Shown here: in pieces, positions 27,762 to 35,135 of the stretch | Layout of the letters: every line of letters starts with the position of its first letter | Numbering within the stretch: the first letter of the stretch is position 1 | Notes under the pieces: generated by a model | Databases searched by the model: none | The model's input: the letters and a program-made list of their open reading frames with translations, nothing else | Told to the model about the DNA's origin: nothing | From: Selaginella moellendorffii | Lineage: Eukaryota > Plantae > Lycopodiophyta | NCBI RefSeq assembly: GCF_000143415.4 | Contig: NW_003314266.1 | Location: forward strand, 1,572,463-1,636,462 | Length of the DNA stretch: 64,000 nt | Direction: 5' to 3' | Program-made: the position numbers and the translations under genes

Positions 27762-30298
27762 ATGGCAGCTCAAGAAGAGGATGCGACTCGCCTGAGATTG
27801 CTCCTCGAGTCGTCCTCGAGCTCTCTTGGCGACATCGCCGCCGCCTGTCATGCGGTGGAATCCGTCTCCAGGCACTTGCCAAGATCGTTCTTTTGCGTTT
27901 GCTTCCCGCTCCTCCTGCGCAGATTGTTTGGATTCAAGGACTTCCAGGCAGGGGCAGTGACTTCCTCGGAGGGATGGCTCTCGGTCGTCTCGCAGCCGGG
28001 CTGTGAATCGGCCGCGACGGTAGTAATCGCTCTCCTAGCGCCCGGGAGCTCGCTCTTCAAATCCCTCCTCGCCTCGGACAGCGAGAGCGTCGTGAGGTAT
28101 GTGTTTCCATTCGAGCGCCTCCCGGAATGGGTCCGCCGCCTCTTGGCGGTGGAGGGCGGCGGCCCAGTGCTGGAGCACGTCTCGATTCTCTTCCGGAAGA
28201 GGCTCAAGGAGGACATCACTGGGTCGATCCAGATCGAGCTAGACATCTTCCAGTACTACATCTTCTGGTTTGCCTACTACGCGGTTTGCAAGGAGTCTCC
28301 AGCTGCCAAGACTTCCAAGACTGGGCTCTCTCGATCATCCCAGCTGCGCAGCCAGATCGAGAGCTGGGCTTCTTCCATCCCGGGGCTCCATCACTCTCAC
28401 CAGGGAAGCTTGGTCTCGCCGCTTCATCCATACTTGCAGCTCCTCCAGCTCTATCTTTCACACTTTGTTGGTCCAGCGATGATCCGGAAAGACAAGCAAG
28501 TGATCTCACTGTGGGAAGACTACGTCATCTCGCACGCCGACATACTCGTCCGGACTTTGATCGATTTTTGGCTCATTGACGACGATCCTTGTCCGTTCTC
28601 GCTCGCGGTGTGCCAGTCTTTGCAGCTCCACACTTTGCCGCCACCTTCGTCTTACGTGCCGCCAGGAAGAGATCTCATCGATGCCGTGAAGCTGCTCATC
28701 AACTATTTCAGTGCTCTTCTCCAAACGCAGATTGGTCACCACGAGCAGTTCTTTGCTTCGCCAGAGTCACCGGCTGGATTCAGGAGGAAAGCTTCGCTTC
28801 TGTCGGATTTGCGAGCAAGTTCCGCGCTGAATGCTAGTCCGTATCTGCAGTCGCTGCAAAGGCCGCTCTATCGGTTCTTTCTCCGGGCGTTTTGTTTGTG
28901 GCCGGTTGGGACGTCCCTGACCAAGGTGCTGCCGATGGTCGACCTGTGGCTACACTACTTGGAACCATGGACGGCGATTCTTCTCGTCCCAAAGGACAGT
29001 AGCGTTCAGCCTGGCTCCAGAGTTGTTCTTGACGAGTCGAAGCGCTTCTACTCGGCATACTGGCAGGAATACGTTCTCTCCAACTATGGTTTCTACACGT
29101 CGCTGGTTTCGCACTTCCTGGATTTCGCTTTGAAGTTTCTACACGTCGACATGGAGCTGGTCGTCCAGGCAACATGCAAGGTGAACCCATCGCTCCACTT
29201 GCTATAGGTGGCTCCTATACATACACCCATAGAAACTGATCAGAGCTGGTGAACTGATGGCGTTGTCTCTTTTTGTTGAAACAGGTTCTCGGTGTTTTGG
29301 CCAAGTCAGATGATCTGTTAGATCTTCTGCGGAGGGTTAATGCCGCGTACACGGAAAGCTTTCTCGGGAGGCATCACTATACGAGTAATCCTTTTGTTGA
29401 CAGAGTCCCAACCATCATGGAACAGCTACAGGTAACTCTTTGCCTATCAAAACTTCCCGTTTTACTCTTTGCTTATCAAATGTTCCCGTATCCTTTCAGG
29501 ATTGGGAAGAGGGCATGACAAATTCAGAGAAGGAGCATGGCGAGATCTTGCACTCGAGCATGCAGACCAGTGCCCCCCAGCTGCATTTATTTGGTGTGGG
29601 AGAATACGGAGGCCATTATGTCTTACAGGTGATATTTGTGAACTTTGGTATCTCTTTGCTAAACAGACTATTCCTTTCAGAGCATCATCTTGCTGGCGGA
29701 AGCGGAAAACCGAGCTTGCAACACCGACAAGCTGCCAGTGTCTCCCAAGACCTTGAGAAATCTGAAGGAGCTCGTCCTGAAAGTTTTTGAGCGGGAGGTT
29801 TTGGGAAGGCAGCAGCCGCTGAGGTCGGACTCTGGCTCTCCACTCCCCGAGATGGTGATCCCGGAGACAAATCACTCGGAGGAGATCCCGGAGAGAAGTC
29901 CTGGACTCCAGAGGCACAGCGTGGCGGAGGTGAAGTACAAAGGCGATTGGATGAGACGTCCGATAGAAAGCCAGGAGATCGGGTGGCTTGTCCGGCTGCT
30001 GGTGGAGGTCTCGGACAAGCTAAACGGTTGCCTGGGATTTACCGGAGGCAGGGAATTGATCGAAGAACAGGGGTGCTCATCACACTCGCAGGTGCTCGAC
30101 GCTGTTTTTCCCGAAGTCCTCAAGCCAGTGGCGAGAGCTCTACTCGCAGCTTTCCTCTTCGTGGTGAAGGAGTTGCGGAAGCGGGGATTTAGAATAAATT
30201 TGCGGCCGCTAGCGAGCAAGCAGGCGATCAGTTCCGGGGCTCTAGCGCTCTTCTTCTACTGGCTGGTCAAGAAGATCGCGGGGTATTTCTTCAAATAA
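27762..30298 (+). CDS. SMPD4 (neutral sphingomyelinase 3)-like / plant PNET1-like nuclear-envelope membrane protein
   Basis: FPLLLRRLFG, FQYYIFWFAYY, LQRPLYRFF, WLHYLEPW, YKGDWMRRPIES.EIGWL and RINLRPLAS followed by a C-terminal TM helix. Confidence 0.8.
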
Positions 30299-30572
30299 TA
30301 GCCGTTGGATGGATGGAATCGACGGCTAAGGCGCTAGGGTTCTTTACGACGCTTGAGGCATATTCCATTGGCGGGTTTTTCAAATAAGTCCAACACGTGG
30401 CTTATCCACGAGCATCCGCCGAGTGCTACGTGGCAAGGCTTCATAACGTTGTGGCTTCCAAGGACGTGGCGTTTAGGGTTTATAGCACAAGAAGAGGCGG
30501 CAGGAGCTGCGCCAAGCATCCAGGCAGGTTGAGGGATATCACTTTGGAGTTTTTGGTCACTGTGGATTGAAA

Positions 30573-32173
30573 ATGGAAGAGTTTTCATCGTCTTCGTCGG
30601 GATCTCTCTGCGTTTTGGAGCAATGGCGATCGGGTGGTCTCGTTGGTGTTTGTTTTATTGATGGATTCGGCCGGGATCAATGCAGGGAGTGGCCGGGAAG
30701 TGTTTCGAGCTTGTGTGGAGAGCCATGGTGGGAGCTTTGGAGTCGCCAGCAGCTATCAGTCTTGCGACGTTTGGGGGAGTGAAGAGGCCTCAGTTGCCGA
30801 TCAATTTTTTCAAGTTTCCTGCCGCCACGCGCCTCAAGGCTGTGCAACAGGTTTGTCTAGCGGCATTTTCGTTTCCACAAGAAAAAAAGCTCTCTCATGT
30901 TCGTTCTTTGCAATTTTGATTTTTCTTGCAGTACATAGGCTGCTTTGAGTACCGGATAGCGCTTCAGCCACACTACAATGTTAATAAGTACAGGCCACTG
31001 GCAAAACTTATGGACACTGCACAGATGGTTAGTTTCTTGAGAGTTTGTAGCGATTACTTCTTCAGGGTTGGTTTTTATTTTTGTTTCTCTCTTTCCAGAT
31101 GATTCACAGTCCTCAGGCAATTAAATGCGTTGAAGGTGTGATTCTGGCAATTTATCTCACCGTAAGCTTTCGACATCTTTGTTGGGAAGTTCTTAATGCG
31201 TGCTTGCTTTTGTGGAGTAAGGCCGGACTCCAAGGCGTGGAACGAATTCCCGTGGGTTTTGAGACTGAGCAAGACACGAAGGTACATCGTCCATATGATA
31301 TCTGCGGTGGTTTTCTAAAGAGGTTTTTTGTATGAGCTACAGATCCATCAGCACATCATTCTAGTGGTGCGCAATGGAAAGAAGTTTGGTGCGTTTGGGA
31401 TGAGCCGCGAGGCCGACTTGGCAGGAAGAGAGTTTGAGTTTGATAGGTTCTCGTCATAGCTCTTAAGTTTCTCCTTTTACATCCTTTTAAATTTTTGCAG
31501 CTTCTCAAGTATTGTTTCTGATTACAAACGAGCCTACGAAGGCCATCGCCACACCATCCAGAAGCTATGGGTTGGACTGCCGGTAATCTTTCTTTTTCTG
31601 CTTTGGAAACTTGAACCATTTAAACTCTAATTTGTCCTCCTTTTTTATCAAGGTGGAACTCAATGTCGAGTCTTATAACTACGTTTGCTGGCGGTACTTG
31701 ACACTCACGCCAAACTCGCAACCATGGATAGAGGTAATTCTTTGCGCATACTTCTCTAAAGTGACTAAAATTCTTACTTCAGTGCTGTGCCGAAATGGAC
31801 AAACACTTCTCCCAATCGAAAAAACTCTGGGAAAGGTCAGTCTACCTTGTCGAAACCCATACTGATATTTTTCTTAAATTCTTTCTTTCTTTTCCTTCTA
31901 GATGGCTGCTCGAGGGACAGGGAGAAATCCCAAAGAACCAAAGCATCTATAACAACGCCAAGAAACTGGATATAAACGCTGTTCCCAGAGCTGCAGGCGC
32001 GATCTTGAGGATTCCAAGGCCGCCTTCACGCTCGACGATCTTACCATCGATCGTGAACCTCAACACTCCTGGTAAGAAAAGCGCTGAAAGTTAATTAGCT
32101 AGGTAGAAACTGGAAGAAAAAACAAAAGCCAGAGAGAAGAAGACCAAAGAAGCGCTATCTTTTCCCTGACTGA
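30573..32173 (+). CDS. VASH: Vasohibin-family tubulin tyrosine carboxypeptidase (detyrosinase), multi-exon; 5' end uncertain (30573 or 30680)
   Basis: Spliced RLKAVQQYIGCFEY..NKYRPLAKLMDTAQMMIHSPQAIKCVEGVILAIYLT..ERIPVGF..HQHIILVV..FGAFGMSREADL parallels VASH1 RLEAVQRYI..QY..KKSRPL..LMD.AKEM...PIKCLEAVILGIYLT..ERFPISF..RHIVL..YGALGMSRREDL. Confidence 0.88.
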
Positions 32174-32432
32174 ATTTACAGTGCCATCGCGAGTGGGTTT
32201 TCATGAGATCCCGTCCATCAGATATTTCCACGACTAACTTTTAATGGGAGTTCTTTTATTCTACCTTTAACTTAACCCCGCCTTTTATCGTGTGACGTCT
32301 GCCCTAGTTTCTTGTTTCATGTGAAGAGGTCCATCTTCGAGGGTTTGGAGATCGCGTGTCCGCGTCGGCGCTTCCGGTTTGCCTCGATCCCTGGGAATTT
32401 CTCACAATGCAGGGCTGAATCGCCGGGGATTG

Positions 32433-35135
32433 ATGTCATCAATGCGTGGAATGCTAAGAATGCGTCGCAGATTCGCTGCCGCTGCTACGAATGGAGCTCT
32501 CAAGTCGTATTCTCTCGCGGCGGAATCCCAGGTGCGATTGCCAGATGAGTTGTGTTGTGTAGTCGAGCGAAGAATCGTTCGAGAATTTGTAGTCGAGAGA
32601 ATCGTTAGAGAAATTCGTCCAGTTTGGTATTGTTCTTTCTTGTGATTCTTTGTTCTGTTTCCTTTGCTGATACATATCTTCGTTTTTGGTCAGGGCGGTG
32701 GGCTTTGTCCCTATGGACGTCGTGAGCATATGAAGCTTCTCATGGAGTTCTTCCAGAAGAATCTTCCCAGAGCGTGTACTTTCCTGGCCCCGCCGACGAA
32801 CTTTGCATCAACGTCGTACCGATTCCCTGTCAGGAAGTTCCAGTTTAGATCGTCGTCTGTGCAAACAATCGGGCCGAGATGCTGCGCTTTGCCCGTCAGA
32901 TTTTTCTCGAGCACTCCATCGCCAGAAGCACTAGATCGGCTAAATTGCTGCAGCCACAAGAGGGACTCCGACTCCGACGATGAGACCGAGTCTCTGGGGC
33001 GGTGTTCTTACGTCCAGCCTCCAGGTAATCGGGAAGAGGCAACCGAGAAACTCCAGGAGGAATTCGAAACTGCGATGAAGTGCTTCGAAGACGCTCCACC
33101 ATGCCTGGACGACATTCCGAAGATAAATCCCAATGGTAGGTGAGTATATTTGCTTTTCATCTTCTAGTTGCTCGAGAATTGTGTCTAACGCTCGGGTTTT
33201 GCAGGTGTTTATGCCAACCATAACTTGCGCTTGGATCTCATCAGCGTCTATGGATTTGACTACGACTTCACGTTAGCTCACTACACTGCGAGTTTGCAGC
33301 ATTTGATTTACGACCTTGCCAAAGAACAGCTTGTAAAAGAGGTATTTGCAGTATTTTATTTTCTTTGCACAACGATTTAGGCTGATATCTTCTATGAACA
33401 GCTGAAATATCCGGAATCATGCTTGGATTTCAAGTATGATCAGAATTTTCCAATAAGAGGGTTATATTACGATAAGAAACGGAGCTATCTGCTGAAGCTA
33501 GACTTTTTCCACTGTGCGGAAGTTGCGAGTTGTTTCTTTGGCCGCCGGCGTGTAAGTGGATGTTTCTTTCTGTTCCTTCTTAACAGTGAGATCAGTTAAC
33601 GCATGAGGAAGTCGAGCAAGCATATGGAGGAAAGCATATAAGCCCAGAGAACTTAAGTAACCTCGTCCCTCTTATGGATTTATTTTGCTTGAGCGAGGTA
33701 CATTTTTTATGTTTATTTCTTCTTCTTGCTATAGATGTTATTGTCTATACAGGTCTGCCTTCTATCCGATGTTATTCAACATTTCGTAGATCAAAAGCTC
33801 CAGTTTGATCCTGGTTATGTGTACGAGGACGTAAGACGCTCTGTTGAGAATATCCATCGAACCGGACTTTTACATAAACTTATCCTTGAACGCCCAGAGG
33901 AGTACCTTGTGAAAAATGTAAGAACTTGGCTTTCTGTTCTCGCATTTTAAGCGCTTGTGAATACAGGAAGCTGTCACCCGGATGCTAAAAAGGCTTAAAG
34001 AGATAGGAAAAAAGACGTTCATCATCACAAACTCTCCTTTTCCGTTTGTAGATGGAGGGATGAGATACTTGTTTCAGGTAAACGGCCAGTCTTTTGATTT
34101 TTCCTGTCATAACATTGTTTATATGCGTAGGAAGACGGAGACGACGGAAGTTCCTGGAGAGACTTGTTTGATGTTGTTGTGGCTCTGTCAGATAAGCCAA
34201 ACTTCTATTCCTCTCAACGACCATTCAGGTAATGTTTATTACGGACATAGCAAAAGATTCAATGAATATCGTGAAACAGGCATTACGATATAGAAGCGGA
34301 CAGGTTAACCTTTAACAAGGTGGAAGAGTTTGAACCTCATGCTGTTTATTACCATGGATGCTTGAAGGACTTTCTTCAAATCACGAAGTGGCGAGGAACA
34401 GAGGTGTGAAGGTTTTGCACTGGACAGCTTTAAAATGCTTAACATTTGCAGGTCCTGTATTTTGGAGATCACTTATTTAGTGATTTACGAGGCCCTTCAA
34501 AGGCTGGATGGCGCACGGCTGCTATAATTCGGGAGCTTGAGGTCTGTCTTGAGATATAAATCAGTATAAAGCAACTCATTTTCCACTTTCAGAGAGAGAT
34601 CGCTACACAAAATGAAGATGAATATCGCATCCACCAGGTATTTAAAAGGGCCTAGCTGTCTTATCGTAAACGTGATAGTAATTTGTTAACAGGCACGATA
34701 TCATATGGTTCAAGAGCTGCTTGGCAAATATCACGGCTTGCCTGTGGGACCTAGAAGGGACAAAGAAAAAACTCTTCTCCTGGCATTAAGAAAGGAACGC
34801 TTGAATGCGAGATTATCGATGAGCCAGATGTTCAACCGCTACTTTGGTTCAACGTTCCTCACAGATACTGGCAAAGAGTCGGCTTTCGCATATAACGTGC
34901 AGAAGTACGCGGACGTGTATACAAGCCGCCTTGAGAACTTGATGACATATTCTAGTGAAGCGTGGCTCTATACCCCGTTCGACGTGAAGATTTTGCCGCA
35001 TCATATCAAGGTACTCATGTCTAGTGGTTTTTCTCTGATTGTTCACTAATTCGTGTTTCAAAAGCTTGTGTGTGACTACAGGTCGGGCCGTCTAAAGTTT
35101 TCAAGGATTGGCCATTTGAATCCTACCCAGCATAG
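32433..35135 (+). CDS. HAD-superfamily IG 5'-nucleotidase (NT5DC/cN-II-like) with organellar-type presequence, multi-exon
   Basis: [63 protein letters not shown]. Confidence 0.92.

Follow-up and report, generated by a model that had tools for sequence, protein, structure and literature searches.

SmVASH-b, an expressed vasohibin gene of Selaginella moellendorffii and a probable autonomous tubulin detyrosinase

The window analysed here, the whole stretch of 64,000 nucleotides from Selaginella moellendorffii, contains on its plus strand a real vasohibin-family gene, SmVASH-b, which is intact and expressed. A three-frame reading of 30500-32250 combined with splice signals gives nine exons spanning 30680-32094 (903 nt, 300 codons) and eight GT..AG introns of 49-81 nt each (Table 1). 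Logan contigs from four sequencing runs, each belonging to a different study, were placed on 30300-32500; such contigs may omit rare transcript forms. All eight joints of the model are found in these contigs, seven of them in three or four runs; the joint of intron 5 is found in run X7, and 11-letter loose ends fitting exon 6 are found in X1 and X6. The contigs skip exactly the pieces bounded by GT and AG and are in that respect cDNA-like (the RNA nature of the runs is only guessed), so SmVASH-b is transcribed and spliced as modelled. Spliced transcripts are present in at least four studies, and parts of the SmVASH-b stretch are matched in the libraries of nine. An earlier note, made from the letters of this DNA alone, had proposed an intact multi-exon vasohibin gene on this strand and had suggested cDNA as a check on its frame; the gene stands, and the frame is unbroken in correctly spliced contigs.

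Table 1. Exons of SmVASH-b and other features of the locus, in window positions
Feature	Position	Strand	Content and support
upstream ORF	30573..30782	+	69 codons, stop TGA 30780-30782; out of frame, overlaps the true start
exon 1	30680..30850	+	start codon, MQGVAGK...; poorly conserved N-terminus, then onset of the conserved core (KRPQLP.NFFKFP)
exon 2	30932..31027	+	Y64, K76, R78; FEY and NKYRP motifs; joints in four runs
exon 3	31099..31161	+	K98-C99, AIKC motif, catalytic cysteine
exon 4	31222..31281	+	AGLQGVERIPVGFETEQDTK; joints 31161>31222 and 31281>31343; inside the alignment of the RefSeq protein with VASH2
exon 5	31343..31446	+	catalytic H134, S151, R152, L156, R159; E153 at the VASH2 R212 position; HQHI and GMSR motifs
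exon 6	31501..31582	+	joint in X7, loose ends in X1 and X6
exon 7	31653..31733	+	VELNVESYNYVCWRYLTL...; joints 31582>31653 and 31733>31783
exon 8	31783..31835	+	joints 31733>31783 and 31835>31902
exon 9	31902..32094	+	end of the folded core and disordered tail; ...NTPGKKSAES, stop TAA 32092-32094
proposed basic C-terminal exon	32103..32173	+	RNWKKKQKPERRRPKKR; part of the 3'UTR in the observed transcripts and of an intron in the RefSeq model
RefSeq alternative last exon	32181..32237	+	VPSRVGFHEIPSIRYFHD

The ends of the gene differ from those given in the earlier note, which had placed the start at 30573. Contigs are unspliced over 30300-30847 (that of X7 starts at 30419), so the vasohibin frame opens at ATG 30680, just past an in-frame stop. 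This is the first in-frame ATG after that stop, the RefSeq protein begins at the same codon, and the joint 30850>30932 that closes exon 1 is found in contigs of four runs. ATG 30573 lies in another frame, and no intron connects it to the vasohibin frame; between 30573 and 30680 the sole phase-compatible donor/acceptor pair would make a 38-nt intron, which is absent from the contigs. Three upstream ATGs (at about 30573, 30622, and 30661), one per frame, lie ahead of the true start in 30573-30679; with A at -3 and G at +4 the first of them stands in a strong context, and it runs over the main start in a different frame. Should the mRNA include these codons, the vasohibin would have to be translated by leaky scanning or reinitiation, and its translation may be limited by them. 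The 382 nt between the stop of an upstream plus-strand gene and the SmVASH-b start (30298-30680) differ between haplotypes by indels of 13, 9, and 1 nt, and contigs of three runs merge the two genes, which points to UTR overlap or to transcription read-through.

At the 3' end, contigs of four runs continue past 31900 without a splice, those of one run as far as 32213 and those of the other three to 32270-32279, so the frame closes at the TAA in exon 9. The basic C-terminal exon RNWKKKQKPERRRPKKR that the earlier note had offered as a microtubule-binding or nuclear localization module is unspliced 3'UTR in the contigs of these four runs; as a coding exon it would require a 31-nt intron (32072-32102), the joint of which (32071>32103) is found in no run. 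The RefSeq model ends differently, tblastn placing residues 294-311 of its protein at 32181-32234, and its joint 32071>32181 was not found in the contigs of the four runs. Some X1 and X6 contigs keep intron 5 (31447-31500, 54 nt). For the window haplotype, such retention brings in an in-frame TAG at 31457-31459; the other haplotype has CAG in its place, so that the retained intron adds 18 residues in frame, and RefSeq isoform X1 (P0043, 333 aa) is the intron-5-retaining form of that haplotype. At about 31706-31725 and at 32002-32020, other, deeper contigs (in four of the four runs at each place) match short pieces ending at 31725 and 32020 and then extend for 212-255 letters unlike the window, with a loose consensus that is identical between the runs; another transcript shares these pieces.

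The product corresponds to RefSeq XP_024525379.1 (P0001), which automated annotation names 'vasohibin-2-like [Selaginella moellendorffii]'; SmVASH-b is already known to databases and does not represent a novel type of gene. P0001 maps back to the window exons and is identical to their product over residues 1-293, differing only in the last 18 residues. The search with the Vasohibin profile that the earlier note had suggested gives a match far above the cut-off: P0001 scores 152.5 bits against PF14822 (cut-off 24 bits, E 1.5e-44) over profile positions 48-240 of 245. Single exons match the same profile colinearly, exon 2 at positions 74-101 (13.8 bits), exon 3 at 103-123 (18.2 bits), exon 5 at 145-176 (22 bits), and exon 6 at 180-204 (13.4 bits). 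Exons 1, 4, 7, and 9 searched singly, as short and therefore weak queries, gave no Pfam match, and exon 2 alone, similarly short, gave only a spurious fimbrial match among solved structures. For exons 3 and 5 the best matches among solved structures are human VASH1/2; exon 5 searched against 1.84 billion representative proteins has three matches, including P0001. The full protein P0001 matches VASH2 with an E of 1.1e-30 and VASH1 with an E of about 3e-27. SmVASH-b, with 300 residues, belongs to the transglutaminase-like cysteine proteases and is one of two vasohibin paralogues in S. moellendorffii.

An AlphaFold2 model of the protein, built on 31 homologues, is confident in its core (pLDDT mostly above 90 over residues 40-246) and falls below 50 from residue 247. 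VIA-align places residues 31-246 of the model on VASH1 101-305 and VASH2 90-301 in crystal structures of these enzymes with SVBP (Z 25.5, rmsd 1.9-2.3 Å over 192-205 residues), and Foldseek matches the model to the VASH structures with an E of 1.5e-18; the next fold family after the vasohibins is CPR-C4, with a VIA-align Z of only 11. As modelled, the core of SmVASH-b has the transglutaminase-like cysteine protease fold of VASH1/2. The human enzymes, which are tubulinyl-Tyr carboxypeptidases (EC 3.4.17.17; PDB 6OCH and 6J4S, for example), share its Pfam family and its fold at 29-33% identity, with Z about 25 and an rmsd of about 2 Å, but the predicted tail of SmVASH-b is short and disordered (about 55 residues) and, unlike those of the human proteins, is without a strongly basic microtubule-binding stretch. 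Weak fold matches (Z about 6 over 136-143 residues) were also seen to PDB 9e5c_1m and 9y6s_8G, 96-nm repeat proteins of trypanosomatid flagellar doublet microtubules; these hint at vasohibin-like folds on axonemes, too weakly to lean on.

Alignment of exon 3 to VASH1 166-180, of exon 5 to VASH1 203-227, and of P0001 to VASH2 gives the residue map in Table 2. The non-canonical catalytic set Cys99-His134-Ser151, with Leu156, is present; in VASH1 structures the leucine of this set acts through its backbone carbonyl. Tyr64, Lys76, Arg78, Lys98, Arg152, and Arg159 are also retained, and their equivalents line the tail-binding pocket of the human enzymes, so that the Cys-His-Ser/Leu set and the pocket Tyr, Lys, Arg, Lys, and Arg are common to SmVASH-b and human VASH1/VASH2. 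The five motifs that the earlier note had listed are all present in the exons (Table 1), and its statement that the catalytic and listed substrate-binding residues are retained agrees with the alignments to VASH1 and VASH2; Glu153 had gone unmentioned.

Table 2. Residues of SmVASH-b aligned to catalytic and substrate-groove residues of human vasohibins
SmVASH-b	VASH1	VASH2
C99	C169	C158
H134	H204	H193
S151	S221	S210
L156	L226	L215
Y64	Y134	Y123
K76		K135
R78	R148	
K98	K168	K157
R152	R222	R211
R159		K218
E153		R212

In VASH2, C158A abolishes detyrosination, H193A and S210A dramatically reduce it, and each of K135E, K157E, R211E, R212E, and K218E dramatically reduces detyrosination efficiency (PMC6642083). 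Four of these five critical basic residues of the groove are kept in SmVASH-b (K76, K98, R152, and R159), and the fifth, at the R212 position, is Glu153. The same position is occupied by Arg in the Selaginella paralogue and by Gln in two fern-type sequences. From its sequence SmVASH-b looks catalytically competent; its activity, predicted in this way, calls for caution because Glu153 matches the activity-reducing R212E substitution of VASH2.

The N-terminal helices alpha1 and alpha2, which form the SVBP clamp of animal vasohibins (VASH1 about 57-100, VASH2 47-89), have no equivalent in SmVASH-b. The PF14822 match of P0001 starts at profile position 48, and the structural alignment begins only at VASH1 101 and VASH2 90, with about 30 low-confidence residues preceding the core. 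The same truncation relative to animals is seen in other embryophyte vasohibins: among those scanned that have an intact N-terminus (N-terminally truncated models were left out of this range) the match starts at position 37-48, while that of Ciona runs from position 2. The alpha1/alpha2 region of VASH2 is the part stabilised by SVBP, and VASH2 without residues 1-93 is soluble without SVBP, with about 21% of its detyrosination efficiency left (PMC6642083). Vasohibins of Leishmania and T. brucei are autonomous; kinetoplastid genomes have yielded no SVBP homologue (PMC11761321). Because the helices clamped by SVBP are missing, it is reasonable to expect that SmVASH-b works without SVBP, as the kinetoplastid vasohibins do. 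As non-animal autonomous detyrosinases of flagellated cells, TbVASH and LmVASH offer the best functional parallel to a vasohibin acting without SVBP (PMC11761321), although they belong to another eukaryotic supergroup, also act on beta-tubulin tails, and are likened to SmVASH-b by description.

The other haplotype of the locus (L001, GL377566.1) is colinear with the window, 98.25% identical over 7.6 kb, and has the same neighbouring genes. Neither allele has a stop within the SmVASH-b coding sequence. The alleles differ by 11 coding substitutions, 5 synonymous and 6 not (pN/pS 0.34, p 0.07 in the haplotype codon comparison), and diverge by 1.2% in the coding sequence versus 3.1% in the introns (p 0.015). 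A 12-nt in-frame insertion after 32064 in the other haplotype adds four codons (DEAT) to the disordered C-terminal tail and is found both in the L001 assembly and in the X7 transcript contig. The paralogue (P0002, RefSeq 'vasohibin-1 isoform X1') lies elsewhere in the genome and is 59% identical. A maximum likelihood tree built from 31 homologues pairs the two Selaginella genes as sisters (100/98) within an embryophyte clade (100/99) that also holds the Marchantia 'tubulinyl-Tyr carboxypeptidase' and the Physcomitrium 'Vasohibin-like protein'. Within this pair SmVASH-b is the divergent copy: its branch length is 0.84 versus 0.36, it departs from the embryophyte consensus at 15 of the 78 sites conserved at 90% or more (other sequences at 0-6, the paralogue at 6), and its PF14822 score is 152 bits versus 189. 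The departures include the family-wide invariants P96A, A102G, and V136I, plus H195L. By these comparisons SmVASH-b is the faster-evolving duplicate, still under some constraint, and its specificity may have shifted.

Homologues were surveyed by two profile-seeded searches and a cluster look-up; the searches were word-seeded and covered up to 8000 candidates, and unnamed Logan hits were unassignable. Among the matches listed, named homologues come from the liverworts Marchantia and Riccia, the mosses Sphagnum, Ceratodon, and Physcomitrium, the lycophytes Selaginella and Diphasiastrum, the ferns Adiantum and Psilotum, Klebsormidium, several chlorophytes (Sanguina, Micromonas), and Ciona. No named vasohibin homologue from seed plants was among the matches listed in these word-seeded searches, Ginkgo and cycads being outside the check. 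In NCBI and UniRef, seed plants are probably the source of the majority of plant proteins. A Physcomitrium patens protein of 731 aa (P0022) also bears PF14223, which we take to be the retrotransposon gag domain family, and is probably a fused gene model and not a real architecture. The earlier note had suggested testing whether vasohibins co-occur with cilia across plants; such a pattern fits the named plant homologues among the matches listed, all of them from swimming-sperm lineages.

The published record is at odds with this distribution. The 2016 paper that founded the family bioinformatically described green-algal and moss homologues and stated that vasohibins are 'not in vascular plants' (PMC4866520), and plant cytoskeleton papers of 2024 (PMC11720312) and 2026 (PMC13688044) describe plants as without vasohibin homologues. 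No discussion of lycophyte, fern, or other vascular-plant vasohibins was found in the papers searched. The novelty of a land-plant vasohibin was overstated in the earlier note: RefSeq already carries the name, and moss and algal homologues were described in 2016.

The most likely function of SmVASH-b is that of an autonomous tubulin detyrosinase, and this reading is the probable one; more tentative is the wider reading, in which the family has been kept in seed-free plants for their flagellated sperm. The enzyme is predicted to cleave off alpha-tubulin's C-terminal tyrosine, unaided by the SVBP chaperone. In flagellated sperm the axonemal doublets would depend on detyrosinated tubulin to keep intraflagellar transport (IFT) orderly, as in Chlamydomonas, so that vasohibins would have been retained in seed-free plants through flagellated sperm, and seed plants would have lost the family along with motile sperm. 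A Chlamydomonas VashL mutant has strongly reduced detyrosinated tubulin (most is lost) and stoppages of IFT trains (PMC11770126). VashL (Cre05.g241751) is the only green-lineage locus with functional data and is likened to SmVASH-b here by its function; Chlamydomonas is unicellular with permanent cilia, whereas Selaginella has flagella in its sperm only. The link to sperm flagella is drawn because named plant homologues come only from swimming-sperm lineages and because of the ciliary data on VashL, which together tentatively suggest such a role for plant vasohibins. Sperm-specific expression is in doubt because transcripts are present in libraries of nine studies while swimming sperm are rare cells. 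Against activity itself stand the much poorer performance of VASH2 without alpha1/alpha2 and the glutamate at the R212 position.

The divergence of SmVASH-b permits another reading, here considered rather unlikely, in which it would be a neo- or sub-functionalised duplicate: a cysteine protease with altered tail recognition, directed at another tubulin isotype or tail or at a non-tubulin substrate, while the paralogue keeps the ancestral detyrosinase role. The duplication is specific to Selaginella, the branch of SmVASH-b is more than twice that of its paralogue, and the number of conserved-site departures, the Glu at the R212 position, and the lower Pfam score point the same way. The departures are however mostly conservative (I/V/L/F, K/R), the catalytic residues and four of the five critical basic residues are retained, the ferns are also without Arg at the R212 position, and the allelic pN/pS fits ordinary purifying selection. 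Unlikely, too, is the combined reading in which vasohibins would be the long-sought plant tubulin detyrosinase only where sperm swim, SVBP-free and lost in seed plants, and in which the groove of SmVASH-b would have been re-tuned (Glu153, Leu195, and others) for a distinct tubulin isotype or array, for example spline versus axoneme.

That SmVASH-b detyrosinates cytoplasmic arrays (cortical, spindle, phragmoplast) in sporophyte cells and not sperm flagella, with the phyletic pattern due to coincidental loss in seed plants, is improbable. A strictly sperm-specific gene would not be expected to leave spliced transcripts in four studies or more and pieces of its sequence in nine, but strobili with microsporangia are commonly sampled. 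Detyrosinated tubulin also occurs in seed-plant cells that have no vasohibin, so another plant enzyme suffices there (PMC13688044), which is counted in favour of the cytoplasmic role; the confinement of named plant homologues, among the matches listed, to motile-sperm lineages and the ciliary nature of the sole functional data from the green lineage (Chlamydomonas VashL) count against it. It is very improbable that SmVASH-b is a pseudogene in decay, a product of faulty annotation, or contamination. The three leader ATGs, the premature stop that follows retention of intron 5 in the window haplotype, and an allelic pN/pS that is not significant alone could be read in this way, but both haplotypes keep an unbroken frame, exons are better conserved than introns, the transcripts are correctly spliced, synteny between the haplotypes extends over 7.6 kb, and the gene falls inside the embryophytes in the tree, beside its paralogue.

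The vasohibin family extends to seed-free vascular plants, and statements that deny vasohibins to vascular plants are corrected by SmVASH-b and its paralogue together with proteins of Diphasiastrum, Adiantum, and Psilotum. As a predicted autonomous detyrosinase, SmVASH-b is a concrete candidate for tubulin detyrosination in plants, one that could be tested in the transformable Marchantia, Physcomitrium, and Ceratopteris, and it would offer a vasohibin naturally without the SVBP-binding helices for comparison with the animal enzyme.
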